NCBI GenBank assembly: GCA_964035545.1
Contig: OZ037765.1
Span: forward strand, 34,555,880 to 34,619,879
Direction: 5' to 3'
DNA from: Bugula neritina
Taxonomy: Eukaryota > Animalia > Bryozoa
DNA length: 64,000 nucleotides
Made by a program: the position numbers and the translations under genes. Within the stretch, counting starts at the first letter, position 1. Each line of letters opens with the position of its first letter. Of this stretch, positions 1,256-63,484 are shown one piece after another. The notes under the pieces were generated by a model. That model saw only the letters and a list, made by a program, of their open reading frames with translations. It made no database searches and had not been told where the DNA came from.

Positions 1256-1995
1256 TATGGTATAGAGTAGATATAGTATAGTGTACAGGGTAGATATAAT
1301 ATTATATATTTATAAAAACATACAATCACTTTTGATATAAAAACTGCATAAGTGGCAACTAAAAAAAATCATTAAAACCACAAACTAATAATAAACCACA
1401 ACTATATATTGATTGGCTGATCACTGAGGTTTCCCCAACAGAAGTTAAAATACTGCTACAGTCTGTCAGTGTTTAACTACAACAGCTATAATTTGATAGA
1501 TTGTACATAGCAAAGAAAAAGTTACCTATTATTACCATCATACTTTTACATATTATATAATATAAATATTCATGAAATGCTTTGTGTAACCCATCATGTC
1601 TCTATTTATAGCAGCTAATAAACTGAAAAAGCAGTAATAATAAAAGTTGCTATTGACTTCATTAATAACTTAAATGTGGAGTCTAAGCATGACTTTCCAC
1701 TCCCAGCAGATATTGATCAGGTCTTACAGTATGAAATAGCTACTGCTACCCAATATGTGATCACGTCTATCAACTGTTTACAAATAAATTGGTAAAACTA
1801 AAAAGCACGTATAAAAACTTAGCAGAATAAAAACAATGTCACGGTACATGAAAAATATATAAACTAATAAAATTAGAAATGATTGCATAAAATCAAAAGA
1901 CATATGACAAGTCTGTCTAGCAGCTGCAAGTAACTAGCTAATATGGCAGGTCTGTGTCTGCTGCATGTGAACATGTGATGTGCTGCAGACGTCAC

Positions 1996-4900: not shown

Positions 4901-7900
4901 ACTGCCTCACTCAAAGTCGTCAGTGAAATTACCTGACTTAGAAAACCAGCCTTATTGTTATGATAAAGCGAGACTGATTTTAAGCTACCAGTTTGAAATC
5001 CATTTAAATAATAGAATTATACTAGTAGACTTACCATAGGACAGCCACGACGTTAGTCTACTGCCCACTTAGGCCTCATAGTTTGCCAGCTTGCCAAGTG
5101 CGTGCTCGCACGTTGGCAGTTGAAATAGAAAAGAACGCTCTTTGCAGTGAAAGTGATTACAACACACCCCCTTTCACTAGCGAGCTGGCTTCGCTCTTTT
5201 CTATACCCCGGTGGTGTTATTATGGTATATATTTACACCACTGGGTAAGCAACTCACAGTTGTGTTTCCTTGTACTTAGGAAATGCAACTCTCAGTTGCT
5301 TATCTCCCCAGATTTTTTTTTTATGATAGCTGATGGATGTTTTTCCACTGCATCACACAAGAAATCTTTCAAATAAGATGGTGGCGCCCTAGTGCGTTGC
5401 CTACGCTCAAACTGCTCTGGGGAATTTGCTGCTGCTGGTGACTCTTCCACCACGGGTGGTGTCACCAGTACGGGGGGGGGTCCACCAGTACGGGTGGTCC
5501 CTTCTCAGCTGCCTCTTCCTCATGAATTTGAGGAAATTCCATCTCATCCGGGACGACAGGGGTGTCGGCCCGCTCCACTGGTGGTGGGGCCAGCTGGGAC
5601 CGGTCTTCCGGTGTGTCGGCCTCCTCCTCCTGGGGTGGAGGTGGCCGGGGCAAGTCGGGCGGCGCGTCGGCCGCCCTCTCCTGACCTGGCAGTATCTCCT
5701 CTATCTCTCTGTATGCCATGCCTCGCCCCCTCATAGGAGGGCGTCTAGCAGGCTCTAAGAGAGGAGGTGCTTGACCTGCTGCATCAGGGTTTGTCCAGTA
5801 AGGTTTCAGATGTGCTTCTTTCTGGACCGACACTTTTCCAGACCGATCCACTTTGTAGGTGTGATTGGGCATCACCTCAATCATGCAATAAGGACCCACG
5901 AACTTCGGCTGCAACTTAGCCACCTGTCCACGCTGCCGGCGATGACTGGTCATCCAGACCCAGTCCCCCACCTTGTACAAAGGGGGAGTCATCAGGATCA
6001 CCACTCCTGACCTGCCACTGCTGCTCACGTAGCACCTCGTGAGCTGTCCTCATGCGTTTTACGAGCTCATCCACATAATCATGGACGCTGCTCTCTGGAG
6101 CCGGAACGTGGTAAGTTACGTGCTCAGGAACCCTTGTTTCTCTCCCCAGCATGAGAAAGTTAGGGGTCTTCAGTGTACTGGAGTGAGGTGTACTACGGTA
6201 TGCTCGCATGATTTGCGGCAGTACCAAGTCCCACTCTTCCTGGCTTTTACTGATAAGCAGGCTTCTCAATGAGTCCACTAGCGTTCGGTTGTTCCTCTCC
6301 ACAACCCCATTCTCTTGCGGGTGATACGGGGTCGTCCGACTCTGGTTTACCCCCCACGTTTCACAGAGATCGCTCATAAGTTGCGACTGAAACTGGGCGC
6401 CTTGATCAGAGTGTATTTGTTCCAGCAAGCCGAAATAACAGAACACCTGCTGATCCAAGGCTCTGGGCACCGTGACGGCCGACGTATCTGGAATAGCCAG
6501 TGCATCAGCCCACTGCGTGAAATGGTCAGTTAACACCAGTATCCAATTATTACCTCTCACTGTCGTGGGCATGGGTCCTACCAGATCTACAGCGACTACT
6601 TGCCACGAACGACCGGCATGGAGGCGGCGCCTCCTTGCGGTCTCAGTGGAGCGACCATGCTTGCTAGCTTGGCATATCTCACACTTCCGCACCCGGAGTC
6701 GGACATCCCGGGTCATACCGGGCCAAATCACTGGAGTTGAAGACACCTGGTCACCCGCCCAGCCCCTGCATGAGCTTGCTTATGGGTGTCCCAGATCAAC
6801 TCCTGCCTCAGAGCGGACGGACAGACTACCCTTTCTCGTTCCTGGCGATTGGTGCCCGCTGCTAGCGTTATCACTAACAGCCCATCGCCATTAAACCAGA
6901 GGGAGTCCCAGCGGTCGCAGAAATACTTAAACTCCGCACACCTGACCCGCTGTTCGGCCTCACTAGGCCGACGTCCCTCCTTCTTGGCCCAGACTAGATC
7001 AGCTACTACCCTTGGTAGCGTAACTTGGAGCCGACACAGCTCCCTGACGTTCTTGAGCAGCGTGGGGTTTGCATGAAGGTTGTTAACAGCTTAACTAAGG
7101 GTTTCGGACCAAAGTTTTCCTTTATCCCAGCTGTATATACCTGCTTTTCCCGCCTGTTCTTCAACGTCCGAGCGAGGAGGTCCGCCATCCCTACGCTCGA
7201 TATGTTGGCATTGCTTACACCTATCTGCCTGGCGGCGGCTCAGTCCGTCGGCATTACCGTGTTTCTTACCGGGTCGGTGCTCGATCCGATAAAAAAACTC
7301 TGCCAGGATTTCAAGCGAGCGCGCTACTTGGCTAAATGGTTCAGCCCGTCGACACAGCCATATCAAAGACGCATGGTCCGTTCTTAGCCTGAACGTGCGT
7401 CCGTACAGGTATAGTCTAAAGTGTTTAACCGCCTTGACTACTGCCAGGAGTTCTCTCCTGGTGGTGCAGTAGTTCTTTTCAGGCGCCAACAGGGCCTTAC
7501 TATAGTAAGCTACCACCACCTTGCGACCATCTTGGACCTGAGACAGCACAGCCCCCACATTGTGGTTACTGGCATCAGTACCCAAAATGTACTCCTTCGC
7601 CGGATCAGGATACGCCAGGATGGGCGCCTCTACCAAGCGATCCTTGGGGTGGTCAAATGCCTGCGGTTCTGTCTGCGTCCACTGCCATTGCACCCTCTTT
7701 GCTGTCAGCCGGTTTAGTGGCTGTGCAACTTCTGCGAAGTTCGGTATGTACTGGCGATAGTACCCTACCAGTCCCAGGAATGCCCGCAATTCAGGGAGGT
7801 CGACAGGGACAGCTCAGTCCCTCACAGCCCATACCTTCTCGGGGTCGGTGGGGACCCCAGCTCGACCAACTACATGGCCCAGGTATTTAACTTCTTGCTG

Positions 7901-10900
7901 CAACAACGTGCACTTAGAGGGCTTGAGCTTCAGACCAGCAGCTCGAAGTCTGTCAAACACCTCTCTGAGCCGACTGACATGTGTATCGAAGTCGGGGCAG
8001 ATGACAATGACATAATCGAGATAGATGAGCAAGGTCTTCCAGTGCAGCCCACTCAGGACCTGCTCCATGAGCCGCTGGAAGGTGGCCGGTGCAGACGTAA
8101 GTCCGAACGGCAGTACCTTCCATTTCCAGAGCCCATCCCGCGTAATAAACGCGGCCTTGTCCTGTGCATCAGGACTCAGGGGCACCTGCCAATACCCGCT
8201 TAACAAGTCCAACGTGCTGAAGAACTTGCTACCAGCTAAAGCATCTAGCGACTCATCAATCCTAGGAAGAGGGTAACCATCCTGGATGGTCACGCTGTTC
8301 AGTTTGCGATAATCCACGCAAAACCGCCAGCTCCTATCCTTTTTCCGAACCAGAACAACTGGCAACCTCCAAGCACCATCGGCTGGCTCAATCAGATCCC
8401 GGCTCAGAAGGTCTTGCACCTGTCTGCTCACTTCCTTTTCCTTCTCAGGACGTAACCGGCGAGTCGACTGCCTGGTAGGCACCGTCCCAGCCGCCAGGGG
8501 TATCTCATGACAGACAGCCTTAGCCAGGCCCATGTCGTGATCGCCACAACTGAACAAATCCTTGTACTCAGAGAGGAGCTGCACCTCTACTAGGCATTCC
8601 CGCTTGCTCTCACAGCCATCACAAGCATCCCCATACAATTCCACCAAGTGTTCAGGCACCGGCCCCCTGCCGTCCCTAATGGATACCCGTCGAGCCTCGT
8701 CCGCTGTTTCTAGGGCCGGACCAACATCCTCTTTCTGTATGGAGTGGAATTTTCCCACTAGCGACTCAGCCGGCAATTCTACTGACTCCGTGAAAGGGTT
8801 TATGCACTGTACCAGGAACTCCCCCCGCTCATCCAGCCTATTCAGACTGTTAGCGAGCTGGACGCCCCCCAGTGCTTCCTCCACCACTCCTAAATCGGAG
8901 ATTTCCCTACTGTTCACTTTGCAGCGTACTGTAGCCCGAAAGCGCCCAGGTACAGTACAACTCTGTACCACCTGCACTCCCCCCACCAAGGGTTGGCCAA
9001 ATCGGTCGACACAGGCCAGCTCACGTCCGGCCATCACCACCGCCGACTTGCTAAAGTCGATGTAGCACCTGTGTCACTTCAGAAATGGCATGCCCAAGAT
9101 GGCGTCCTCCTTGAGTTGACTGACGATAAAGGTCTCGCTGATCGTCTGATCACGGACTCGACCAGTCAACTCTATCACGCCATAAAAAGGAATACATGAC
9201 CCGTCCGCCAACGTGCCATGCTCCCCATCATATGGCTTCAGGCTAGCCTGGTCCCCAGCATTGAGTGTGTCAAACAGACGCCGGCTCAGAAGGTTTGTGG
9301 TACACCCAGTATCCAATAGGAATGTGGCAGCTTTTCCGGGGAGGAAATAGCTGCTTCCATATGGCTGGGCGCTCATTGAGCAATTTGTCTGTGGAGGTGA
9401 CACCTCGGGTGCATGGGCTTGGGAATGCACCTGCGCTTTCCGGTTGCGAGGGGGTCGTCGACGTTGCGTGGGCAAGCGGGTTACATCTCGGTCTTTCTCA
9501 CACACGGGCGGCCGAGTGAATGCTCGGTCCTGCGCTCGTGTGGGCAACCGAGGGTAATCCTTGTCTTGCTCCCACTCGTCGTACACTCCATCATCAGGCA
9601 AACCTTCAAAGTGGTTTTTGAGTGCTCAAGCCGGAGGTTTTGGCAGGCCTTGGAGCCTACTAACTCTCCTTGGGGCTTGCCACTTCAGTGAAGGCGGCCT
9701 CCTCACCCGATTGGGTTTGGGCCTTGGCCTTCGCCTCGGAGGGTTAAACCGAGGCCCACAGTTGGCGGAGTCTACCGTGGGCCGCTCCTTTAACTGCCTC
9801 CCTCTACCGTGGGGGCAGCTTTGCATGAAGTGCCCACCACTACCACAACCCCAACATACGGGGCCGCCTCCTGTCGACAGCTGCCGACAACCTGGAGGGT
9901 TGCTCGACTGTCGTTTGTTGGCGTAGTTGCCTGATCTCAGCCAACAGCTCTTGAATCAAGCTTGTGGTTAAGCTAGTCGGCTGCCGCCGTGGCGACATGT
10001 ACAGCTGTCTTGGCCGACCTCGTCGACGTCGACGCGTCGTCGTTGTCGGCCTCGACTTGCTGCAATGTTGCCCCAGGCCGGCACGTACTGTTGGCTTGGA
10101 AATAAGCATTCCCAAGCCTGAGAGCTCGCTCCATAGTCTCAACCTCAGCCACCAGCAGTTGTTGCTTCAGCCCTAGGTTGTTATTAGACTGGAGGAAAGC
10201 ATTTAGCGCCAGACTCTGCCAACCATTCGCAGGCAAATTGCCATAGGCGATTTGTGCTAGCCGCTCAACTACGGTGGCGTGCTCTCTCAAGGTAGTCTTA
10301 GGATTTCTCCTAAGTCCTTCGAGCTGCACCCGAGCATCCCGAGCAGTAAGCCCAAATCGAGCTCTTAACGCCTCAAAGATCTCGCCGATGTCCGGGCCAA
10401 TCCCATAGGGTTTGGCCGGCCCGTCAGACACAACCGTAGCTGAATCAGAGTAACCCTGGCAGGCCATTGACAGATGGCCGCCACATCACTGAACTCAGTG
10501 ATAAATTGCTCCACATCTTCTTCTCCAGAGAAGATGGGAGCGTGCAAGTGGTACCTGTCCATAGGCAGCGCTGGGCCGCCTATGCCGTCCTCCTCCATAG
10601 CTACTGGTTGTTGACGAGGTAGATCCTTTTCGTCAGCCATCTTTCACTCCCTGGCTAGGAGCATTTACAATAATTAAATCCCACCGCTGCCACCACTGTT
10701 GTGAAATTATGCTTCACTGCAATCAATGGGTCTATTGAATGAAACCCACTTCGCCAGGTTTACTAATTGCTAAGAGTTTATTTGCTTCAAATTACACGCA
10801 AAAAAGAATAACACCAACTAATACAAAACGATTACATAATTGAGAGCTCGCTACACACAACTGTACAGTAACAAGTCCAAGTCCTCTCTGCCGACTACGC

Positions 10901-11388
10901 TGCCTAACTGGCTTCCACTACAGTTAGCAGCTACGCCTACTAATTAGCCTGTCAGCCCTCCTTGATTGGCCAAGATGACCAGGCCATCCTAGCAGCCTGA
11001 CACCAGCTGCTTCACTCAACTGTCAGCGAGAAGTGTCTATTCCATACAAATACAAAATACTAATAATCTACTAATAATACAATTATTAATACAATTAACA
11101 CACTATGAAAAACCCTTACAATATCACAGCTAGTTACAGCCTGGGGAGAATCAACTACAGGAAAGGATAAGAAATTGATACAGTAACCTGTTTACTCAGG
11201 TCAAACAGAGGATCATCTTCATGGGCTACAACAAATCCCATGTCTTTCAACAAAGTTTTGATGTTAACATAGTCGATGTATGAACCATCTCGGGTTGCCT
11301 TAGTCAGTTCACTGCCATCATCTCTAAAGAATCTCTCATTGTTTATGATCATGACACGACCTCTAACAGGGTCAGTCATCGCATAAAC
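1996..11388 (-). CDS. Copy A caspase (peptidase C14A) exons: 11388-11188, 3206-2984, 2716-2516, 2358-2249, 2154-1996
   Basis: p20: YAMTDPVRGRVMIINN, RDGSYID, VIMSHG, GKPKLIIFHACSG. p10: DADDFYIVKPST, GRNKNYGTWFIRIL, LRKLFFFP. Confidence 0.95.
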
Positions 11389-14300: not shown

Positions 14301-17300
14301 AAAATTTTTTATTGAAAAATTAAAAAAGTATATGAAAGAGGAATGCAAGAGCTATCTTTTCATGTAAAATTTGTTAATGTGAGACAAAAACTGTTCGAGC
14401 TATCCCCTGGAAACCGTTTATATATAACATAAAGCAGTGCCTGAATCTGGAAAGTAATGACCTTAAACTAACTGTGCCTATCTAATTTGGTGTCATGGGT
14501 TCTTGTCTATTGCTGTTTACATATGACTGAGCTCACGCAAAGGATGTTATTTGTAACAGTAACAGTTTATAATAAAAACCTGATCGTACCAGGGGCAGTT
14601 GAAGCAGTCTCTTCTCTTGCAGATCTCAGTTTGTTGACACATTCTTTTATGTTATCAGCTTGTTCTGGAGAGAGGGGACTGCCTGGAGAACAAAACATTG
14701 CCAGTTACCACAAAAATTCTTATAATAATAAAAGTTGATAAAAAAACAACAGAGAAACCGACTATTTCGCATGAAGTAAAATTACACGTACATGGATACA
14801 GAAGAGCACTGAGTATCTCCTCATCACCACACAGGGTTGTTGAAGATCCACTGCACAGTCTGGGACTTGTTGGTGTGGAATGTTTCAAGGAACGAAGACA
14901 CCATGGAGGATTCAGTACTTTCTTAGGACAAGGAAGTCCTAGCAGAAGGCAGTGAGCACAGTAGCATGTAGTGACTGGTCTACTTGCTGGCCAAGTTTGT
15001 AGAACAGGTCTAATGATGTTGTTGTTGGTGGTGATGAGTGTCTCCCACATTCTGCTGATGTTGGCAGCATTAGATGACACGTAGAGTAACACCTTTCTAG
15101 ATGTATAATCGTGTACCAGCTGTGTGTAGATTCCATTTTGATAAACACTGGCTCCATTTCTTCTCACTTTAATCACAGCAAACTCATCAGGAAACGACTC
15201 CAGCAAACCAACACTCATCTGCTGATAGACATAGTGTGGCAAGGCTAGACCATTGAATTTAGTTTCAACTCGAAGGAGCATGTTTTTTGGCGAGGAGTAA
15301 GAGGTATTAAAAAGGTCATTAGCAAACTGGGGAACAATAAAGCAGGGCTCCTTGGAATCACTAGGTAAAGGACCATATAACAAACGGAATGTTTGAAGCA
15401 AGCACACAGCAACTTCTACGTTTTCCAGACTGGTAAATGATGTTTCCTGTTTAACCAGATGAGTGAGAAGGCATTGCATCATCAAACCAGTCTCAGCGAA
15501 ATGATTAACAAATTTCTCAAAGTCTTCTTTTTCAACAGGCATCCTATCCTCTGAAAAGTATGGCTGGAACTTGTCAACTCTACTCTGCCATATGTTAGCA
15601 TCATGATGATACAAAACACAGAGAAGTTTGGTAACTTCTGAAATCTTGTGGAATATGTATGGCCGGAGAGAGCTGATATCTTTATACCACAAGACTTTGC
15701 CACAGTCATGCATGTATGTGAGGATTATGTCTAGCTGACTCGGCTCAATGTGTTGATGTTGTGTTTGTACGTAGTTCAGTATCTCATCAAAAGTGCTGTA
15801 CACAGAGGGAATAGACAGAACTTTTTCATTTACTTCCTCCCAGACCAGAGGTAAAGGTTTCACAAAATGGTGACTGCTTTGGAGAAGAGACTCCTTGATC
15901 AGGTCAAACACTTCATACTTATCATCTTTCCCCACTTCATAAATGTCCTCATCAAAAAAGACTCCTTCAGTTGATTCAATGAAATGTTTGATTTGAGCAA
16001 ATTCTCCACCCAATGCTTTCTCTTCTCTAATCATTGCTTCACACAGTTGATTGGAAGTTTCTAGAAAGTTTTTCCGAAGCTCCTGAAACTCCACATTTTG
16101 AAACTTATCTTTATGTGTGAAAATAAGTTTTGGAGCACCCAGAGTTGGGTTAGCCAGATAGAGGTGAGACATGTAATCAAAGGCTAATCTTCTAACAGCT
16201 TCTCTGTGTGTTGATTCTCTTGAAATCTCCTCATACTGCTCTATGTTGACTACTATGACTGGAATACAGTTCTGTCTCAGTGTCAGTTGATAGGTGATAT
16301 GGTAGACCTCCTGGCCTCCCATATCAATGAGACGGAGTACTGTACCATCCACCTCCACCTCTTCAACATTAAACACCTTTGTTGCCTCATCTCTCACAGC
16401 ATCTGGCCCTCTGTCGGTCAGAACTCTCTTTCTGTCAGCATTCTGTAATGTTCTGATTAGACTGGTTTTCCCAACCATGGTATTGCCCAGTACAGCTATA
16501 GTAGCAAATGGTAGACTTCTACCAGCACCTTTAGCCAAATCTGTGTAGTATTGTCTCACAGCATCTACTCCTCTCTCACATATTTCTAGTGGAGGAGATG
16601 TGAGAGCATTACAATATCTAACATTCAGCATACGAAGTTGAGTTAGCTGTAGTATCTCAGGATCTAAAGATGTCAGGGAGTTATTAAAAGATATAGCCAG
16701 TATCTGCAGACTACTCAGTGTGTACACAGGAGATGGTAAACTGGTGAAATTATTCCTGTATATGATCAGTTTCTTTAACTTCTGTAGACTCTGCATGCTG
16801 AGAGAAATACAAATACTGCTTTGTAAAAAAATTAATATAATTCCATATTATACTCTATAATATATATCATTATAATGACTATCTAGGATTCTGCAATTAA
16901 ATTTATATTTATAGCTTTTCATATAGATTTTAAACTGGTAGGAGTTATTTCCCTGGTGTTTGATACAAATTGGAGCAGGTAAATGATACAATATATCACC
17001 CAGTAACTGTAGATTGACTATCATTGTAATATATCTCAGTATAACATTATAATATATCTCAGTATAATATTGTAGTGCATTTCACAATTCACTATATTAT
17101 GTGGGTCTACTTATACAAAGCTACTTCATCAGGTTGATCACGTTATATAGAATTTATTATTTACAAAAAATACAATAAATTAAACTACTAAACTAATTAC
17201 ACGATTACATAATATTGAGCACTTTATACACAACTACTCTATGCCAAGTCCCAAGCTGCTCTGCTCGGCTAGCTGCTTAGCGTGCTTCCACTACGCGTAG

Positions 17301-41300: not shown

Positions 41301-44300
41301 TAATAAATTTGTCATAATTTAAATGTTTCATATTTGATTATAATTATTTTATTAACGCAGAATTTTTACTTAGTTATCGCTAAATTTAACTAGTCACAAC
41401 TTTACTAGTAAAAGCACTGTTGCTAAGCAACTATACACTACTATTGCAGCTGGCGCGACAAAGAGGTGCGATGATTGTTAGTTGGGCATTCGTCGAACCC
41501 AACGAACAAAAAACGTCGTGTGTGAATAAGCTATAAGCCAATGATGTGCGATCAGATAACATTCGTCAGCTGAAACCTAGCTGGGTCAGGTTCCAACGAA
41601 ACTGTGAAAAGTCGATCACGTGATCCAAAACGAACAAACTTTTCTGCTGTCAGACCAATCAAAGAATGCTAGTTTGGCGCAATTGACACAACTGTCCGAT
41701 CACGTGATCCAAAACTAACAAACTTTGTATTCGTCGTGCCATTTTGGTCCGCTATTCGTCCAATTCGTTAATCGTGTGAATAAGCTAGCAGTCGACGCAG
41801 AGTCGTCCCTGATACTAACTAACTCCATAACAATAAGCATAACGCTAGCATCTTCTACCAAGCACGCTAAGCCTAGGGCCACACGGTGCGTATTTTCGCA
41901 TGCGAAAATTGAAATCACAAGTAGCAAAGGTGTCCACTGTGAGCGTTGAGAAAACGTTGCACTTGTCGCTCTGCATTTTCAACGCAAGTGCGAATCGTCT
42001 CTGTCGTCGTCACCTAATTGGCTGGTAGTGATTAAGCGAGCCCAATTTCGTTATTTTAGTGCTAAATTCCAGTAAATTGCGTTTTATTGAAAGCGAGTGC
42101 GATTTAAAAATGAAAGCTTTATTTATCACGCATCACTGACGCTACAGTGGACACCTTTGCTACTTGTGGTTTCAATTTTCGCATGCGAAAATACGCACCG
42201 TGTGGCCCTAGGCTAACTGCCAGTGCAAATCATCTACACCTTCTATTAAGCTGATTGGCTATCCTGCGTGAGGTTGTTGATTCTATTTAACTAGTCTTGC
42301 CTTGTTTAACTGCGTACATCAGTAGCTAGCAATAATTGTCCAGCCGAGTATAAGAGAGATTTTACGCATTCTAATTGTCAGCCATTACGATGATTGATCC
42401 TTTGCACTTGTAGACATCATGCCAAGCGTATAGAGAATAAGCCACGAGGAGTTATCCTTTCGATAATAACATAAACTAAAATCCCTTACAATATTATAAT
42501 ATACCTCAGCGGGCTCAGTATAACATTATATTATATCTCAGTATAACATTATAATATATCTCAGTATAACATTATAATATATCTCAGTATAATATTATAA
42601 TATATCTCAGTATAACATTATATTATACCTCAGTATAATATTATAATATATCTCAGTATAATATTATAATATATCTCAGTATAATATAATATATCTCAGT
42701 ATAATATTATAATATATCTCAGTATAACATTATAATATATCTCAGTATAACATTATATTATACCTCAGTATAATATTATAATATATTTTAGTATAACATT
42801 ATAATATATTTCAGTATAATATTATAATATATCTCAGTATAACATTATAATATATCTCAGTATAATATATTATATCTCAGTATAACATTATAATATATCT
42901 CAGTATAATATTATAATATATCTCAGTATAATATTATAATATATCTCAGTATAACATTATATAATATAGCTCAGTATAATATTATAATATATCTCAGTAT
43001 AACATTATAATATATCTCAGTATAACAATATGTTATATATCAGTATAATATTATAATATATCTCATAATATAGACATAATTATAATAATATAAGTCACTC
43101 TGATTATGGTAAAATATTACGTCATAAGTTTCTGCACAATTATATTGACTTTATGTTTATATATATATTGTATTTATTTTAGTATTATTCTACACTATAA
43201 TATAATACACACCTGTTTGGTAGAGTTGACAGTTTACAGTAACTCATGTACAACACTCTCAATGATAGTAAGGATGTGAATATATTGTCAGGTAGACCTT
43301 CAGATAGGTTAGTTGCTGATATATCCAATACCTTAAGATTCTTCAGTGAAGATATGCTGTAACATAACATACAGGTAGAAAATCATGAAAGGTAATTGAA
43401 CTATATACTGTACATTCTACTCAACGGTATCATAAGAGGTCACTTATGAGCTTTTCATAATGTTATAGCAACTTTATATACCAATATTTATCAGAGTAAA
43501 AAGTTCCAAGTTGTCACACCATGTCTTACATCTGATAGAATAGAATAGTAAAGACATGACATCACATATATTATGTATAATGATTTATATAATGTAATTA
43601 ATTGATACAAGTCAGTTTATGTACATCACAAAAGATTAGAAGCTTCTACACCATTATTCAATAATATATTTATATATTGTATTTATTCTAGTATCATTCT
43701 ACACTATAATATAATACACACCTGATTGGTAGAGTTGACAGTTTACAGTGACTCATGTCTAACTCTCTCAATGATAGTAAGGATGTGAATATATTGTCAG
43801 GTAGACCTTCAGATAGGTTATTCGCTGATATATCCAATACCTCAAGATTCTTCAGTGAATATATGCTGTAACATAACGAAAAGGTAGAAAGTTAACCTAC
43901 TATATAAAAGTAATATTATTGAATAAGAATAATTTAGTTTTATTTAACTCTTGATCTGACCACTAAGAGTCAGATAAATAATACAGCAGTTGCTACTAAG
44001 GCTCAGGTTATTTCAAAGAGAAAGAGAAATATATAATAGCTTCACATTACACTCAGCTACAAGAGAGTATCTAACTTATATGGATATAATTTTATACTAT
44101 AACAAATTTTATACCTGGTGCCAATATAAACTGTTACACAGCAAAATAATTTATTAGAGGAGTAAGTGAGAAGTTGTTATACCATTTCTATCTGAGTACA
44201 TATCTAATAGAATAGAATACAATAATTGACTTGTGACCTATAATATACATAGAGTCTAGTTGACTCAATAAAGATAGTGCAGATAACTTCATAATGTATA

Positions 44301-46015
44301 ATATATTACACACCTGTTTGGTAGAGTTGACAGTTTACAGTACTCCATGTGCAGCTCTCTCAACGATAGTAAGTATCTGAATATATTGTCAGGTAGACCT
44401 TCAGATAGGTTATTATGTGATATATTCAATACTTCAAGATTCTTCAGTGAAGATATGCTGTAACATAACGAAAAGGTAGTAAGTTGACCTACTATATAAA
44501 AGTAATATTATTGAATAAGAATAATTTAGTTTTATTTAACTCTTGATCTGACCACTAAGAGTCAGATAAATAATACAGCAGTTGCTACTAAGGCTCGGGT
44601 TATTTCAAAGAGAAAGAGAAATGTATAACAGCTTCACATTACACTCAGCTACAAGAGAGTATCTAACTTATTTGGATATAATTTTATATTATAACAAATT
44701 TTATACCTGGTGCCAATATAAACTGTTACACAGCAAAATAATTTATTAGAGGAGTAAGTGAGAAGTTGTTATACCATTTCTATCTGAGTACATATCTAAT
44801 AGAATAGAATACAATAATTGACTTGTGACGTATAATATACACAGAGTCTAGTTGACTCAATAAAGATAGTGCAGATAACTTCATAATGTATAATATGATA
44901 CACACTTGTTTGGTAGAGTTGAGAGTTTACAGTAACTCATGTCTAACTCTCTCAATGATAGTAAGGATGTGAATATATTGTCAGGTAGACCTTCAGATAA
45001 TTTATTCCCTGATATATTCAATACCTCAAGATTATTCAGTGAAGATATGCTGTAACATAACATACAGATATGATAACGTATTAACTTATATATACTCATC
45101 ACATATTGGTTTGTTTTAAATTGAAACATAAATAGAAATACAATAAACAAGGTAAATAATACTAAAGCTAGTGTTAGTGCGAGGAGAGAAAACTCCACAT
45201 TCTACTACAAAATAATATCTCACTTATGAATATATTTTTATATTATAATATAGTACCTGGTCCAGTCAGCATTACTCTCTACTCCAGATACCCTCAGATG
45301 TGTGAGATGAGGAAACAGTTTGTTGATATTTGGAGGAATGTCATCCTCCAGTACAACATGAGTAACTGTATGATGTTTACTTATATCATTGGCCTCTTCT
45401 ATAGTGTAGGGTGTAGTATCATTCTTCATCCACTTATCATCAGCTCCATCTATACTGGATGTGTTGAACCACACCTCGTACTTCTCTATAAAATATTCAC
45501 CACTTTATAAATAATAACTTTGATATCAAATAATAGAGTGTCTCAACACTATAAACAGTATTGAAGTAAACTTGGATATTTTATAACTTCAAAATACATC
45601 CTGTGATATATTCTGACAGGTGAAAGGGTAGCCACGTTGTTTATACTTCTGTACAGTATATGTTATAGTATAATATAATATAATATAATATAATATAATA
45701 TAATATAATATGGTATATGTCAGTATAATAGTTATAGTATAATAGTTATAGTATAATAGTTATAGTGTAATAGTTATAGTATAATAGTTATAGTATGATA
45801 GTTATAGTATAATAGTTATAGTATAATAGTTATAGTATAATAGTTATAGTGTAATAGTTATAGTATAAAAGTTATAGTATGATAGTTATAGTATGATAGT
45901 TTTAGTATAATAGTTACAGTATAATAGTTATAGTATAATGTTAAAGTATAATAGTTATAGTACAATAGTTATAGTATAATAGTTATAGCATAATAGTTAT
46001 AGTATAATAGTTATA

Positions 46016-46092
<77 letters not shown>

Positions 46093-46489
46093 TAAGCAGG
46101 TATATAACATCACATAATAAACACTATAACAATATAATACTCAGATATGGTCAACACAGAGTTAGGTGCAAAGTAATGAAACAGTAGTGAAGAAATGTAA
46201 GAGAAAAGTTATGTTCTCGTGAGAATATAAACCTGCACCTCAACGTATAATTTATTAAGAACAATAAAGAACTTATGCTATCTCAACTTCTCCACTACTG
46301 CACCTTAATGTCATAACACATAAAAAAAAAGTATAAAATTTCTGTAGTTAGCAGTTGAAGTATTCATATTTATATAATTTACTAACTTAACACAGATTGA
46401 CCTGAAGGTGGAGGTGAAGGTGTAGGTGTAGGTGTAGATGGAGGTGTAGGTGGAGGTTCGGGTCGAAGTAGAGATTTACGTTGACCCAT
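1996..46489 (-). CDS. LRR-ROC-COR-caspase fusion gene, copy A (Roco/MFHAS1-like GTPase with C-terminal caspase), 14 coding exons, about 1364 aa
   Basis: Exons in transcript order: 46489-46402, 45485-45257, 45049-44906, 44457-44314, 43865-43722, 43356-43213, 16797-14792, 14682-14590, 11749-11541, 11388-11188, 3206-2984, 2716-2516, 2358-2249, 2154-1996. All junctions are GT-AG with matching phases; total 4095 nt with no internal stop. The exons from the LRR cassettes to the stop recur in the same order, with short introns, in copy B. Confidence 0.88.
3464..11120 (-). mobile_element. Ty3/Gypsy LTR retrotransposon 1 (degenerate), in the intron that splits the caspase p20 of copy A
   Basis: LTRs 10697-11120 and 3464-3886 (TG..CA, roughly 5% diverged by eye); TSD ATAT; PBS TGGTGGCAGCGGTGGGATT (tRNA-Leu type); PPT next to 3886; frameshifted gag, PR (LDTG), RT (YLDY), RNase H and integrase (5462-10640). 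Confidence 0.95.
13496..13565 (+). mobile_element. tRNA-derived SINE-like head
   Basis: A-box-like TGGTCCAGAGG and B-box-like GGTTCAACCC at tRNA spacing; no cloverleaf apparent. Confidence 0.35.
14792..16797 (-). CDS. Copy A large exon: last LRRs + ROC GTPase + COR
   Basis: LRRs ending LTSPPLEICERG; G1 GNTMVGKT, G3 DMGGQ, G4 THKD; COR motifs LPLVWEEV and LTYMHDCGKVLWY; Cys-rich end CYCAHC. Matches ORF 14655..16796. Confidence 0.95.
17400..25008 (-). mobile_element. Ty3/Gypsy LTR retrotransposon 2 (degenerate) with extra ORF3
   Basis: LTRs 24720-25008 and 17400-17689 (about 15 differences); TSD GTAT; tRNA-Leu PBS; gag 23589-24635 with CCHC knuckle; pol fragments (LDSG, YLDD, RNase H, integrase) to about 19216. 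Confidence 0.95.
18060..19150 (-). pseudogene. Element 2 ORF3: C2H2-like zinc fingers + Pro/Arg-rich segment + coiled coil (frameshifted)
   Basis: CRLCQLHF...FCPCGEYSYHRDYILRHQRTVRC; after a frameshift LRETEERIRELEREVQRLAPRISAAASKLRALRDSVAQLKKNA*; collinear with ORF3 of element 3. Confidence 0.75.
25274..25831 (+). mobile_element. Solo LTR
   Basis: TGTGGTA...TACTACA; TSD ATAT; internal TATAAAA and AATAAA; absent from the uninterrupted copies of the host element (near 35585 and 41275). Confidence 0.75.
25912..26583 (-). mobile_element. Solo LTR, related to and inverted relative to 25274-25831
   Basis: TGTGAT...ATTACA; TSD CTTT; empty site GTCGTGCTTTTATATC seen in the host-element copy near 41190-41205 (reverse complement); shares CTGGAGCTCA and CCGA-rich motifs with 25274-25831. 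Confidence 0.75.
26945..34445 (-). mobile_element. Ty3/Gypsy LTR retrotransposon 3 (young) with extra ORF3
   Basis: 305-bp LTRs 34141-34445 and 26945-27249 (2 differences seen); TSD CTAT/CCAT; tRNA-Leu PBS; gag 33156-34109 (CWECGNQGHFRRYC); pol 33040->28637 (IDSG, YFDD, RNase H, integrase) with frameshifts. Confidence 0.96.
27535..28356 (-). CDS. Element 3 ORF3: two C2H2-like zinc fingers, RS/P-rich basic stretch, coiled coil
   Basis: CQICGEECASHRSLKLHVNAH, FCPCGYNDVYPYPVTRHRATGC, KRRTRSPSPPMRRRRTPSP, LATVEERLLRLQEEFTQLAPDLL; 273-codon open frame between pol and the 3' LTR; true start codon uncertain. Confidence 0.75.
   Translation of the reverse strand: MYCINTVETFSDYTRPATTRVRDRTLPAPHPEEYASGDRPEPLCRRWRWVSPQTEEEIETAWGSRGRTRCQICGEECASHRSLKLHVNAHLLLTFCPCGYNDVYPYPVTRHRATGCFLGENYVVDAKLYPEFLTLIRPLVKKAMLLAVLTSGFQRVLDNTRQQSPLVSDRLQITYTPEEFTYPEEGEISPTPTKRRTRSPSPPMRRRRTPSPDPVRLATVEERLLRLQEEFTQLAPDLLNTTTGLFQLKGSVCRMKRKLRTCQAKHRRAQQGL
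34674..35842. mobile_element. Same TIR family, copy 2 (complete, inverted, inserted inside copy 1)
   Basis: TIRs AGCTTATTCACAC; flanked by TAA at 34671-34673 and, after removing element 4, TAA at 40684-40686. Confidence 0.8.
35844..40679 (-). mobile_element. Ty3/Gypsy LTR retrotransposon 4 (compact, Mag-like), young
   Basis: 328-bp LTRs 40352-40679 and 35844-36171 (2 differences seen); 5-bp TSD GCTAT; PBS TGGTGGCAGC; gag with two knuckles (CKFCGYTH..C, CHNCGKKNHFEKVC); PR IDTGA, RT YFDD, integrase; two stops and two frameshifts. Confidence 0.96.
40687..41533. mobile_element. Same TIR family, copy 3: rearranged derivative with the same end on both sides (about 145-bp inverted repeats)
   Basis: 40687-40833 is the reverse complement of about 41388-41533; flanked by TAA on both sides. 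Confidence 0.75.
41871..42213. mobile_element. Tourist-like (PIF/Harbinger) MITE
   Basis: About 70-bp TIRs GCCTAGGGCCACACGGTGCGTATTTTCGCATGCG; TSD TAA. Confidence 0.85.
42491..43070. repeat. 23-bp minisatellite (AGTATAAYATTATAATATATCTC)n; other half at about 17020-17070
   Basis: Direct tandem units. The same unit flanks the left end of the 25-kb nested insertion, so one array was split. Confidence 0.9.
43213..45049 (-). CDS. Copy A: four 144-bp LRR exon cassettes (48 aa, two LRRs each)
   Basis: 45049-44906, 44457-44314, 43865-43722, 43356-43213. Consensus SISSLKNLEVLNISxNxLSEGLPDNIFTSLLSLRELxMxxCKLSTLPN; each has acceptor ttacag and donor gtgtgt. Confidence 0.92.
45257..46489 (-). CDS. Copy A N-terminal exons: MGQRKS start with Pro/Thr-rich stretch (46489-46402) and LRR N-cap exon (45485-45257)
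   Basis: MGQRKSLLRPEPPPTPPSTPTPTPSPPPS joins in phase 1 to EKYEVWFNTS...IPPNINKLFPHLTHLRVSGVESNADWT, which ends in phase 2 and so fits the LRR cassettes. Confidence 0.7.
45660..46090. repeat. 14-bp minisatellite (TATAGTATAATAGT)n followed by (TA)n
   Basis: Direct tandem units. Confidence 0.9.
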
Positions 46490-49518: not shown

Positions 49519-51153
<1,635 letters not shown>

Positions 51154-57341: not shown

Positions 57342-58094
57342 TGGCAGACCACCCGTGTTCTGTGTGTCAAGTTATTCTACTAACAATATAGCCTGCATAC
57401 AATATTATACTGCTAAGTTACTGTTTCAATATTATTTGCTTCATCACCTTTGTTGCTTTCTACTAAATTTGTTAATTTTATAAAATATATTTATTAAAGT
57501 ACTACTCCTTGGGTGGCCACCTCATCCTAGTAATACACTCATACTTTAATCCGCTTCAATCAACTTTATGAAAACTTCAATTGGTTACTGAATTATCTAA
57601 TCTCAAGTAGAGACAACTCTTCAAATCAATTTTATTTACTAAGGCATATGCAATGGTTTCTCTACATCCTAAGAATAATATGTTGAATAGATGGTAATGA
57701 GATAAAAGTACAGAAATAACATAGATGATGGGGCTAAGCATGAAACCCCATAAACATGTTTAAGTCAATTCAACAGATTTCAACCAGGTTTCACAGCTGA
57801 ATAAACTTCTATGTGCAAATATGTGAGTGTCTATACATTTAATAAAAGTAAATAGGCAAAAAACACAAAGAATTTATGTTGTTTAGCATGCAAGTTGAAT
57901 AAAAAGTGGATGTGGTAACTCACATTTCTACTTAAATCACAGGAACAGGCAAAATATATGAATTCATAAAATTAGAAATGATTGCATAAAATCAAAAGAC
58001 ATATGACAAGTCTGTCTAGCAGCTGCAAGTATCTAGCTAATATGGCAGGTCTGTGTCTGCTGCATGTGAACGCGTGATGTGCTGCAGATGTCAC

Positions 58095-61000
58095 TCACTG
58101 TGGGAGTTGTCTGCCATGGAACTTTGGAAAGAAGAAAAGTTTTCTGAGGTGAGTGAAAGTACATTCCTGACAATTAGGTACATTACCACCAGCTGCTTCA
58201 TCTCCTGTCTTCTTACAATATGCAATACTGACTCTTCTAACTCTGTCTTGTATCTGTAAGTATAAATAGAAGAGAAATATAAAGCTGATGACTCAACACA
58301 CTACACAGTATCATACAAAGAGTAATACTGAAGTACTTACTATCCTAAACAGCTCACTAACATCTCTGTGACAGCTGTGTCTGTAGAATGTAGCCACCAG
58401 TATTCTAATAAACCAGGTACCATAATTCTCATTCCTACCAGCCTTGTAAGCTGTAACACATGAAAATGAGCAGTTAAATGTGAATGTCAGATTGATATGT
58501 GAAATAGTTTTTATTTAAAATTTGCAACAATTCTATTGACATGCAGCAAATATTTTAATTCGCACAAATAAAAGTTTCAGTCGACTCAAATATAATTTTC
58601 TTCCCACTAACTTTCTGTACTTGGCTTCACAATGTAGAAGTCATCAGCATCTAGGTGAGTGAATCTATCAAAGTGAATATTTGGAGACACATGTTGACCT
58701 GCAGAAGACTCACTCCCAGCTGTTGCAGAAGATGAGGGTAGAGGGGTTGGTGTTGGTGGTGAGATGGTGTCTAGGCTTTGTGACTGTGCAGCATTACCAG
58801 AATCAGTTCTGCCTGTATACAAGATCATCGATGATGCAGAGTGAGAACAAACCCACCACTTGATTTCCATGTAGTAAAACCAACTCAAAACTAGAAGACG
58901 TATATATGTACTTTGGTTCAAAAAAAAATTATTTGGAACCATTATTAGTTCTAATAATTACTGTAACATGAATTAATGTAATCTAACTGCTAGTTCTAGT
59001 AACATGAGGAACAACTCTGCATTACTTACTGCCAGAACAGGCATGGAAGATGATGAGTTTGGGTTTTCCTCTCATGGCAGGAAATTTACTAGCTGAGAGT
59101 AAATCTTTGACTTCTGACAAGTTGACAGGTTTACAGTGTCTGTCATAGAAGATGTTTCCAGAAGTTCCGTGTGACATGATGACTAGAATGAACATGCCAA
59201 GATCCTTGTGGTCTCTGTGGGTGGTCTCCTTTCTCACTTCTGATAATATCTCCTGGTGAGTCATATTTAAATATTAAAATAAAGAGAGCTTTTGGTAAAT
59301 TTTTGTTATCATGGTATAGAAAGACATTTTTAGAGCTGATAGAAACTAACATCTGGTGAACATAAAATATTATATATTTGTTTAGATGTATGCTAGGAAT
59401 GTTGCTTTCAATGGTGAACTTGACAGCTAGTGTTGCATTTAGAATACAATGAATAACATATTATTAATTAACAGTCTATGTCAATAGTACAGAGCTTTAT
59501 TACACAACGGATAAGAGATTGATATAGTAACCTGTTTACTCAGGTCAAACAGAGGATCATCTTCATTGGCTACAACAAATCCCATGTCTTTCAACAGAGT
59601 TTTGATGTTAACATAGTCGATGTATGAACCATCTCGGGTTGCCTTAGTCAATTCACTGCCATCATCTCTAAAGAATCTCTCATTGTTTATGATCATGACA
59701 CGACCTCTAACAGGGTCACTCATCGCATAAACCTGCAAACCAATGCATTTTATCTTACTAAGGGTAGAAACTGAAAACGGATTAATCAAATCAAATATGA
59801 GATTCAATAGAAAATAAATGAAGAGCCATAATATCAAAAAATATTTTTCAATGATCTAAAAACTTGCGTTACCTGCTGGTGGTTGTCAAACTTCTGTCTA
59901 ACTCGTTCATTGATGGTAGGTTTCAGCTGCATGCCATCAACCATAAATATAAAAGGTTCAAGGTCATCTTTAGTAAAATCAGCATATCCTTCCTCTTCTA
60001 CATCAGAGCATTCACTGAGGTTATCATCTTCACCCAGTACTAAAATAAACAAAAAGGAGATATGTTCAGTGCTAAGTATCAGATCTACTAAGATATACTA
60101 AGTATCAGAATGACTGTTAACAATGAACAGAATTATACTTTCCCGTTTTAATCAGTAATTATATAAATAATATAATAATTATATAAATCAATTAAAGCTA
60201 AGTGATTTTGTTCTATCTGAGTGTCATGAGTTCTTGTCTATTGCTGTTTACATATGACTGAGCTCAGGCAGAGGATGTTACTTCTAACAGTAACAGTTTA
60301 TGATAGAAAACTGATCATACCAGGGACAATTGAAGTAGTCTCTTCTCTTGCAGATCTCAGTTTGTTGACATATTCTTTTATGTTATCAGCTTCTTCTGGA
60401 GAGAGAGAACTGCCTGGATAATGAAAAACTGTCAGTTACCACATGAAAGTTCTATGCTTCTTAATATCAGAACATAAATAGTAGAAAGACTGATGAAAGT
60501 GAGCAAAACTAAATATTCACTTCAAACTGAATGTAAACATACATGGATAGAGTAGAGCACTTGGTATCTCCTCGTCACCACACAGAGTTGTTGAAGATCC
60601 ACTACACAGTCTGGGACTTGGTCTGAGATGTTTCAAGGAACGAAGACACCATGGAGGATTCAGCACTTTCTTAGGACAAGGAAGTCCTAGCAGAAGACAG
60701 TGAGCACAGCAGCATGTAGTGACTGGTCTACTTGCTGTCCAAGTTTCTAGGACATGTCTAAGGATGTTGTTGTTGGTGGTGATGAGTCTCTCCCACATTC
60801 TGCTGATGTTGGCAGCATTAGATGACACGTAGAGTAACACCTTTCTAGATGTATAGTCATGTACCAGCTGTGTGTAGATTCCATCTTGATAGACATTGGC
60901 GCCATTTTTCTTCACTTTAATCACAGCAAACTCATCAGAAAACAACTTTAACAAGCAAACTATCATCTGCTGGTAGACATAGTGTGGTAGCGCTAGACCA

Positions 61001-63484
61001 TTGAATGTGGTTTCAACTTGAAGGAGCATGTTTTTTGGCGAGGAGTGAAAGGCATCAAAGAAGTCGCTAGCAAACTGGGGAACAATAAAGCAGGGCTCCT
61101 TGGAATCAGCAGGTAAAGGACCATATAACAAACGGAAGGTTTGAAGCAAACACACAGCAACTTCTATATCTTCCAGACCAGTAAATGGTGTTTCTTGTTT
61201 AACCAGATGAGTGAGAAGACATTGCATCATCAAACCAGTCTCAGTGAAATGATTAACAAATCTCTCAAAGTCTTCTTTTTCAACAGGCATCCCATCCTCT
61301 GAAAAATATGGCTGGAACTTGTCAACTCTACTCTGCCATATGCTAGGATCATGATGATACAAGACACAGAGAAGTTTGGTAACTTCTGAAATTTTGTGGA
61401 ATATGTATGGGCGGAGAGAGCTGATATCTTTATACCACAAGACTTTGCCGCAGTCATGCATGTATGTGAGGATTATATCCAGCTGACTTGACTCCATGTG
61501 TTGATGTTCTGTTTGTACGTATTTCAGTATCTCATCAAAGGTACTGTACACAAAGGGAATAGACAGCACTTTTTTATTGACCTCCTCCCAGACCAGAGGT
61601 AAAGGTTTCACAAAATGTTGACTGCTTTGAAGAAGAGACTCTTTGATCTGGTCAAACACTTCATACTTATCATCTTTCCCCACCTCATAAATTTCCTCAC
61701 CAAGAAAGACTCCTTCAGTTGATTCACTAAAATGTTTGATTTGAGCAAATTCTCCACCCAATGCTTTCTCTTCTCTTATCATCTCCTCACACAGCTGATT
61801 GGAAGTTTCTATAAAGTTCTTTCGAAGCTTTTGAAATTCTGTACTTTGAAACTTATCTTTATGTGTGAAGATAAGTTTTGGAGCACCCAGAGTTGGGTTA
61901 GCCAGATAAAGGTGAGACATGTAATCAAAGGCTAATCTTCTAACAGCTTCTCTGTTTGTTGATTCATTTAAAATCTCATCATACTGTTCCATGTTGACTA
62001 CTATGACTGGAATGCAATTCTGTCTCAGTGTCAGTTGATAGGTGATATGGTAGACCTCCTGGCCTCCCATATCTATGACACGGAGTACTGTACCATCCAC
62101 CTCCACTTCTTCAACATTAAACACCTTTGTTGTCTCATCTCTCACAGCACCTGGCCCTCTGTTAGTCAAAACTCTCTTTCTGTCAGCATTCTGTAATGTT
62201 CTGATTAGACTGGTTTTTCCAGCCATCGTATTACCCAGCACAGCTATAGTAGCGAATGGTAGACTTCTACCAGCATCTTTAGCCAAATCTGTGTAGTATT
62301 GTCTCACAGCATCTACTCCTCTCTTACATATTTCTAGTGGAGGAGAGGTGAGAGCATCACAATAACCAACATCCAGCTTACAAAGTTGAGTTAGTTGTAA
62401 TATCTCAGGATCTAAGGATGTCAGGGAGTAGTTGGAGGATATATCCAGTTCTTGCAGACTACTCAGTGTGTACACAGGAGACGGTAAACTGGTGAACTTA
62501 TTCCAAGATACTACCAGTATAGATAGCTTCTGTAAACTCCGCATGCTATATTAGAGAGCATATTAAAAATATTACTTTTTTGTTGAAATTTAAAATCTTC
62601 AAGCCAAAGAATCCGTTACAATTGTATATAATTAAAATCTTCTGATACATATGAAACTTAGAAACTATTTCAAAAAAGCAAAGTCAAAAAGTTTCAGGAT
62701 TTGAACACATAAAAAGTAATTCAAGAAGCTAAAGCTTCAAGCAATATTGTGTACATCTATTCAAGTTAAGAGTTGCGGTCCGGATAGACACTAGACCCTA
62801 GAGTATTTACATTAGTATGTTGCACCAACTACCTGCGCACATTGAAACTTGGTATTTACAAATATTCTAGCTTTGTGGAAATAGATGTATGCATGTATAC
62901 TATGTATGCAGACAGTTGCTGAGTTACTGATGAGATATTATATATATTACAGTATCATTCTACGCTATAAAATTATTCACACCTGTTTGGTAGAGTTGAC
63001 AGTTCAGAGCTAATTATGTGCAACTCTCTCAATGATAGTAAGGATGTGAATATATTGTCAGGTAGACCTTCAGATAGCTTATTATATGATATATTCAATA
63101 CCTCAAGATTCTTCAGTGAAGATATGCTGTAACAAAATATACAGGTATGAAATATTTACATCATGAAGTTAAAATCCTTTAGAACTTGAAAAAGCCATCC
63201 AGTTGTATCAACAAAGAAGTTTCAAAAGAGATGAACCAACGTTCCTGTTTGGTAGAGTTGACAGTTTACAGTTGCTGAGTTACTGATGAGATATTATATA
63301 TATATTACAGTATTATTCTACACTACAATAAAATACACACCTGTTTGGTAGAGTTGGCAGTTTACATTGATTCATGTCCAACTCTCTCAATGATAGTAAG
63401 GATGTGAATATATTGTCAGGTAGACCTTCAGGTAGCTTATTATCTGATATATTCAATACCTCAAGATTCTTCAGTGAAGATATG
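58095..63484 (-). CDS. LRR-ROC-COR-caspase fusion gene, copy B (5' part outside the window)
   Basis: Exons 63484-63341, 63126-62983, 62545-60543, 60413-60321, 60039-59873, 59732-59532, 59252-59030, 58812-58612, 58450-58341, 58253-58095. Same phases and motifs as copy A (GNTMAGKT, DMGGQ, THKD, SHG, HACSG); frame open throughout. Confidence 0.92.

Follow-up and report, generated by a model that had tools for sequence, protein, structure and literature searches.

Shuffled exons encoding leucine-rich repeats (LRRs) have been reported for the ROCO genes of the brown alga Ectocarpus (PMC3341825, PMC11378527), and conflict proteins with the order LRR-AP-GTPase(Roc)-COR-effector, in which the effector may be a caspase, have been predicted for bacteria (PMC8195603). 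Here, we analyzed a 64,000-nucleotide stretch of the genome of the bryozoan Bugula neritina (contig OZ037765.1, positions 34,555,880 to 34,619,879 of the forward strand; hereafter the window, to which coordinates refer unless prefixed), which carries two genes, A and B, that combine an arm of 144-bp LRR exon cassettes with a Roc-COR region and a caspase. These genes parallel both the shuffling of brown-algal ROCO genes and the predicted caspase-bearing proteins of bacteria. Judged from sequence, the cassette exons are probably the exchangeable units of the sensor arm of an expanded bryozoan family of intracellular LRR-Roc-COR-caspase proteins, which we regard as putative receptors.

The likeness to the Ectocarpus ROCOs extends to an N-terminal LRR arm of symmetric exons, a Roc-COR core, gene birth and death, intra- and intergenic recombination and positive selection on the concave face (omega approximately 5.9 in the alga and 5.7 in the bryozoan). 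However, the lineages are unrelated, gene number is 9-47 in the algae and at least 66 in the bryozoan, and an Ectocarpus exon is 72 bp with one LRR, whereas a bryozoan exon is 144 bp with two (25 then 23 residues), its insertion keeping the reading frame. Moreover, the algal proteins are described as LRR-Roc-COR, whereas the bryozoan ones end in a full caspase. Fast-evolving LRRs, a Roc-COR switch, a C-terminal effector and several paralogues per genome are shared with the bacterial conflict proteins. Those proteins are predicted in prokaryotes, lack introns and draw their effector from at least 24 domains, whereas the bryozoan protease matches animal caspases and exon cassettes generate the variation.

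Among animal proteins, the LRR-Roc-COR core is shared with MFHAS1 and LRRK1/2, and relatives in the bryozoan Watersipora have been automatically named MFHAS1 homologues. The vertebrate proteins have few copies and a kinase or no effector, in contrast to the bryozoan caspase; ROCOs of Trichoplax carry CARD or death domains. We know of no cassette diversification in animal MFHAS1- or LRRK-type proteins. A diversified xxLxLxx face is also found in plant NLRs and lamprey VLRs. Plant NLRs use a STAND ATPase where the bryozoan genes have Roc-COR, and lamprey VLRs are extracellular and somatically assembled from gene fragments, whereas the bryozoan germline genes are complete and spliceable, which argues against somatic assembly of the VLR type. 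Neither a bryozoan immune receptor family nor an animal ROCO-caspase fusion was found in the literature searched, which lay mostly outside subscription journals.

Cassette exons and their flanking introns

The cassettes and the duplicated introns between them lie in the window as follows.

44906-45049, minus strand: LRR cassette A1, two LRRs (25 + 23 residues)
44314-44457, minus strand: LRR cassette A2, the most divergent among gene A's four
43722-43865, minus strand: LRR cassette A3, 144 bp
43213-43356, minus strand: LRR cassette A4, 144 bp
63341-63484, minus strand: LRR cassette B1, 144 bp
62983-63126, minus strand: LRR cassette B2, 144 bp
44458-44905, minus strand: 448-bp intron between A1 and A2, of a type also present in at least five other genes
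43866-44313, minus strand: second 448-bp intron, between A2 and A3, with 11 differences from the first

All six exons are 144 bp long, have AG and GT at their borders, begin and end in phase 2 and contain no in-frame stop, in agreement with a preliminary description of this DNA, which had reported four symmetric exons in gene A and two in gene B and whose listed residues at the LRR x positions are all correct. Its scaffold motif EGLPDNIF is invariant in these six cassettes, but family-wide it is exact in 72 of 106. The two 448-bp introns, estimated there to differ at about 11 sites, differ at exactly 11 (2.5%), and the counts of 17-18 differences per 144 bases between neighboring exons were likewise borne out (A1/A2, 18; A2/A3, 17), both above the introns (Fisher p ~1e-5 and ~3e-5). 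A2 alone accounts for most of these differences. Closer pairs are A3/A4 (9 differences) and A1/A3 (10), and the overall range is 6-12.5%. A2 is not a simple unequal-crossover hybrid of A3 and A1, since it carries many differences from both, and none of the 106 cassettes could be recognized as the donor of its private tract.

The pair of 448-bp introns was rejected as a clock for A1-A3, because introns of this type also come after cassettes of at least five other genes, with a similar distance (2.7-5.0%) from the window copies; an intron that is a module common to many genes cannot date the adjacent exons. For the family, 107 cassettes were inspected and 106 entered the divergence and selection analyses, with about 50 further cassettes and the C6 gene group outside this set. 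Of the 5565 pairs that the 106 cassettes form, only 62 have both flanking introns in common and 438 have one. Thus, family-wide, it is the introns that are the less conserved part, and these counts indicate that introns and exons have been reshuffled through exchange within exons.

A fair comparison was offered by 28 disjoint pairs in which both flanking introns are homologous, with the xxLxLxx strand sites picked in advance from the LRR motif. Intron divergence in these pairs was 0.040, and outside the strand the proportions of synonymous (pS) and nonsynonymous (pN) differences were 0.035 and 0.043, whereas strand pN reached 0.215 with a strand pS of 0.067. Exon divergence exceeded intron divergence in 21 of the 28 pairs (p 0.0005), while scaffold pS equals the intron rate (0.035 vs 0.040, p 0.57). 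These data indicate that, in pairs with homologous flanks, the exon excess is real and restricted to few codons. The earlier claim that exons diverge faster than their introns therefore stands for those codons in flank-matched pairs and fails for the family as a whole, and no sign was found that recent intron-only conversion explains the intron similarity entirely. Similarly, in an orthologous gene from a public metagenome, which has the same five cassettes in the same order, strand pN was 0.139, compared to 0.072 for introns and 0.042 for scaffold pN (p 0.012 vs introns), and the Roc-COR region had a pN/pS of 0.28.

Diversity at the strand positions and its origin

Among the 106 cassettes, codons 39, 14 and 38 hold 16, 15 and 12 distinct amino acids, respectively, and the motif leucines and Pro46 are nearly fixed. 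In 80 neutral simulations, matched for diversity, with free recombination and a separate tree per codon, no codon had more than 9. Variability at codons 11, 36, 41 and 43 is high in the first base (0.51-0.66) but low in the third (0.07-0.09), a contrast that a mutation hotspot would not be expected to produce. Codon models run with our own code (GY94, fixed tree shape; not PAML) favored M2a over M1a, with twice the log-likelihood difference (2dlnL) being 319, omega 5.7 and selected sites 11, 14, 34, 36, 38, 39, 41 and 43, and M8 over M8a (2dlnL 302). Three neutral data sets with recombination, however, gave 2dlnL of 0.5, 75 and 146, with omega ~2.6 in the inflated two. Likelihood-ratio tests are thus inflated by recombination; their p-values were no longer taken at face value after these simulations, and the tree-free results are weighted above them.

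The selected sites correspond to LRR motif positions 3, 5, 7, 8, 10 and 12, which in LRR structures face the concave side. Residues at the variable sites are polar and aromatic (N, D, Y, E, S, G, R, H, W), and the 106 cassettes present 100 distinct five-site surfaces. Among solved structures, VLR-type repeats match the cassette, and a Watersipora relative is modeled (pLDDT 84) as a regular solenoid in which each repeat contributes a single short strand. The selected sites are accordingly placed on the concave face as a prediction from the LRR motif and this relative's model rather than from side-chain coordinates. The proposal of positive selection at exposed x positions is upheld by the strand pN excess, the allele counts above the simulations and the omega of 5.7; neither a dN/dS at or below 1 at these positions nor scattered or buried variable residues were found.

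Divergent exons could in principle arise without selection, through a local mutation hotspot or through conversion confined to exons, with old paralogues as donors: conversion is real in this family (see below), the 448-bp intron is no paired clock, and recombination alone inflates site-model tests. But conversion without selection would lift synonymous sites too, and scaffold pS does not exceed the intron rate. Third positions are quiet at four of the selected codons, and allele counts exceed those of all 80 simulations. In addition, the same motif positions vary in a Watersipora gene with six 141-bp, phase-2/2, two-LRR exons built on a different scaffold. A neutral account is therefore very unlikely and largely refuted. 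The same Watersipora gene (L052) contains a cassette at L052:9722-9862 that lacks its 5' end and acceptor and includes a stop, and its caspase is annotated as a separate gene 38 bp further on.

A view of how variants arise comes from the pair C1:34228931 and 34351520 (flank divergence 1%), which are identical up to base 77 and then differ at 10 positions, 7 of which are matched by a third cassette within one 53-base tract. In 15 close pairs (flanks 2.1% diverged), the three most variable codons differ already in half of the cases, two or three bases are changed in half of these swaps, and 22 of the 23 swapped hypervariable codons exist in other cassettes; exon divergence in these pairs is overdispersed 4.5-fold. 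The four-gamete test is violated by 49% of site pairs. The sequence pattern is what germline crossover and conversion across a conserved scaffold would leave once diversifying selection had sorted their products; recurrent mutation contributes as well, inseparably here. Two parts of the preliminary description were thereby substantiated: exon gain and loss, with arrays of 2-9 cassettes in the stretches fetched, and conversion inside exons, through the half-exon replacement matched by a third cassette and the shared codons. A 28-bp orphan copy of the cassette 3' end without a GT donor, in the B1-B2 intron (63245-63272), is a trace of past duplication.

Alternatively, diversity could be chosen somatically, with cells selecting cassettes by exon skipping or DNA rearrangement so that receptors differ per zooid or cell. 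Symmetric exons permit this, and LRR exons of brown-algal ROCOs are alternatively spliced (PMC11378527). Contigs from three runs guessed to be RNA, matched at 90% likeness, join exon 2 of gene A to A1-, A2- and A4-like cassettes, but such joints are expected from paralogues at this likeness, and those to A2 or A4 were put down to cross-mapping, from which short contigs of many paralogues do not distinguish cassette skipping. While Ectocarpus loci contain inverted and non-coding cassettes, no inverted or orphan full cassettes were seen among the 107 (the single orphan is the 28-bp end), and the cassettes within each array share one strand. The orthologue, moreover, retains its five cassettes in identical order. 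Somatic choice thus seems highly improbable, although skipping of cassettes is possible given their phase-2/2 frame.

Gene layout, effector domains and family

Exons were searched singly, and frame continuity was judged from splice phases. In both genes, successive exons agree in phase, so that the frame runs from the start through a complete caspase. Gene A has the layout of gene B, drawn out to 45 kb through inserts in two introns.

46402-46489, minus strand: gene A first coding exon, MGQRKS start and proline-rich tract
45257-45485, minus strand: gene A exon 2 (cap exon), which forms the N-terminal end of the LRR arm; phases 1 (5') and 2 (3')
16798-43212, minus strand: gene A 26-kb intron with retrotransposon-like open reading frames and a 23-bp minisatellite near both ends
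14792-16797, minus strand: gene A large exon with the last LRRs, Roc GTPase and a putative COR; phase-2 acceptor, phase-1 donor
1993-11388, minus strand: five gene A caspase exons with a 7.6-kb insert bounded by long terminal repeats between them; catalytic His and Cys in 2984-3206
60543-62545, minus strand: gene B large exon, in which the final LRRs precede Roc (P-loop GNTMAGKT, DMGG) and a putative COR
58092-59732, minus strand: five gene B caspase exons with SHG and HACSG; stop after the small subunit

Gene B, comprising two cassettes, the 2-kb LRR/Roc/COR exon, two linker exons and five caspase exons, lies almost entirely inside the window, with its cap exon just outside at C1:34623164. 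In gene A, the joint across the 26-kb intron is inferred from the phases and the layout of gene B. The cap exon of gene A has 67 related copies genome-wide. The MGQRKS start fits the MGxxxS N-myristoylation consensus and recurs, each time followed by a variable proline-rich tract, in three other paralogues (L008, L009 and L050), which suggests membrane anchoring. In the RNA contigs, coverage falls on the cassettes and the cap exon and is nil or close to nil on the introns, with joints at the predicted sites, including 45049-45257 with CT..AC ends; loose ends past 45485 resemble the proline tract.

The inserts in the gene A introns (3464-11120 and 17400-41800) are retrotransposon-like, and the surrounding exons stay open. 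The direct repeats 3464-3886 and 10697-11120 are 95% alike. The 23-bp minisatellite shared by 42514-43065 and 17022-17074, near both ends of the 26-kb intron, is placed as though inserts had landed within or next to it. Elsewhere, a 386-bp inverted repeat pair (93%) flanks an AT-rich tract at 49562-51096 and resembles a non-autonomous transposon.

The Roc domain exceeded the Pfam PF08477 cut-off in both genes (1.7e-07 for the gene A exon), with P-loop GNTMAGKT and DMGG present and matches to structures 6hlu and 3dpu, and the Roc-COR exon matches the Roco of C. tepidum and LRRK1/2 in sequence. The COR-A match is weak and under the cut-off (E 0.0025-0.0056), although its position and length after Roc fit and a relative gives a stronger match (1.6e-05). 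Between genes A and B, pN/pS is 0.23 in Roc and 0.33 in the COR region. Both caspases keep the SHG and the Cys of HACSG and align to caspase-3 and -6, with small-subunit exons present and in phase. The NACHT/NB-ARC (STAND) ATPase of NLRs is absent, the switch domain being Roc-COR; in function the family may resemble NLRs, to which it does not belong.

Counts across the 216-Mb genome reached at least 66 for related Roc-COR exons, 138 for catalytic exons of caspases and 154 for hits of a 24-base cassette motif. A family cluster of ~1.2 Mb surrounds the window, and further paralogues are spread over several chromosomes. Of the 107 inspected cassettes, 105 are bordered by AG and GT and stay open over 144 bp; the two exceptions are a cassette with a GC donor and another with an in-frame deletion. 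A caspase catalytic exon lies downstream of all 32 Roc-COR exons closest to gene B, at 1-4.5 kb with the exception of gene A. Two caspase types were distinguished by identity to the gene B catalytic exon (query 59031-59258), 87-100% and 45-49%, and type is independent of Roc-COR similarity: an 89% Roc-COR occurs with a 47% caspase and a 68% Roc-COR with a 100% caspase. This sequence pattern suggests effector swapping between genes in the C1 cluster. In public contigs, the second type has EVCSG, EACSG or ETCKG, the usual Gln being replaced in every one. The closest named relatives are from Watersipora subatra, of which RefSeq XP_067947674.1 and XP_067948342.1 are related across the full length of the Roc-COR exon and carry LRRs, the Roc-COR region and a caspase on one chain.

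Proposed function of the family

The selection on the cassettes gains a likely meaning because they form the front end of a Roc-COR-caspase protein. In our reading, the near-identical exon scaffold provides the stretch of homology on which unequal crossover and gene conversion operate in the germline, so that cassettes, half-cassettes and introns move within and between genes. Diversifying selection acts at LRR strand motif positions 5, 7 and 8 (and 3, 10 and 12), with Roc-COR and caspase staying conserved. We propose that the variable concave face would bind varied non-self molecules, probably microbial or parasite; binding would shift the nucleotide and dimer state of Roc-COR and bring two caspase domains together, leading by proximity to proteolysis, cell death or signaling. 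The outcome would be a one-piece counterpart of the NLR inflammasome. On the predicted architecture, a ligand bound at the variable face is likely to alter the dimer state of Roc-COR and thereby to activate the attached caspase. With regard to the recognition repertoire arising by exon duplication or conversion plus positive selection, as previously proposed, diversification and selection are supported by the data, and recognition is what architecture and selection together suggest.

Several observations weigh against this proposal, in addition to the inflation of the likelihood tests noted above. A second orthologous comparison, with three cassettes, gave no excess (strand pN 0.069, introns 0.097). 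Linkage decays weakly with distance (p 0.056), so that the data do not tell recurrent mutation from very short conversion. The RNA support applies to the family at 90% likeness and not to gene A itself. Finally, the caspase motif HACSG (59031-59045 and 2985-2999) has His at the Gln of QACxG, owing to which the predicted specificity may be unusual, and across both types substrate preference may depart from that of Asp-specific caspases.

Two other roles would keep the same machinery. If allorecognition between conspecific colonies were the selective agent, the caspase would kill cells at a rejected contact; a colonial animal with clustered, highly variable genes and a death effector invites this idea, and the allorecognition loci of other colonial animals are clustered and variable. 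However, no signal peptide or membrane anchor was seen and the N-terminus fits myristoylation, so the sensor is probably cytoplasmic; the diversity is distributed over many paralogues on several chromosomes, and no bryozoan allorecognition gene was found in the literature searched. We consider this role improbable. Equally improbable, in our assessment, is that the variable LRRs act as guards of host proteins or as decoys binding pathogen inhibitors and vary to escape antagonists: the same selection pattern fits and polar and aromatic residues suit protein binding, but the 100 surfaces among 106 cassettes suggest many ligands. Both roles fit the data less directly than non-self recognition.

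Beyond non-self recognition by single receptors, a bolder and rather doubtful extension is an NLR-independent intracellular immune system of ~70-100 one-piece receptor-caspases, in which germline LRR recombination and selection, swapping of caspase types and splicing choice would multiply the repertoire within a colony. If the proposed reading is true, the Roc-COR GTPase, which is familiar chiefly through LRRK2, serves an animal phylum as the switch in a diversified sensor coupled directly to a caspase, a design previously predicted for bacteria and, minus the caspase, for brown algae. This would allow a direct test of ROCO proteins as immune switches. It would also be a clear case of receptor diversity arising from symmetric exons, a conserved scaffold and conversion, without somatic recombination.

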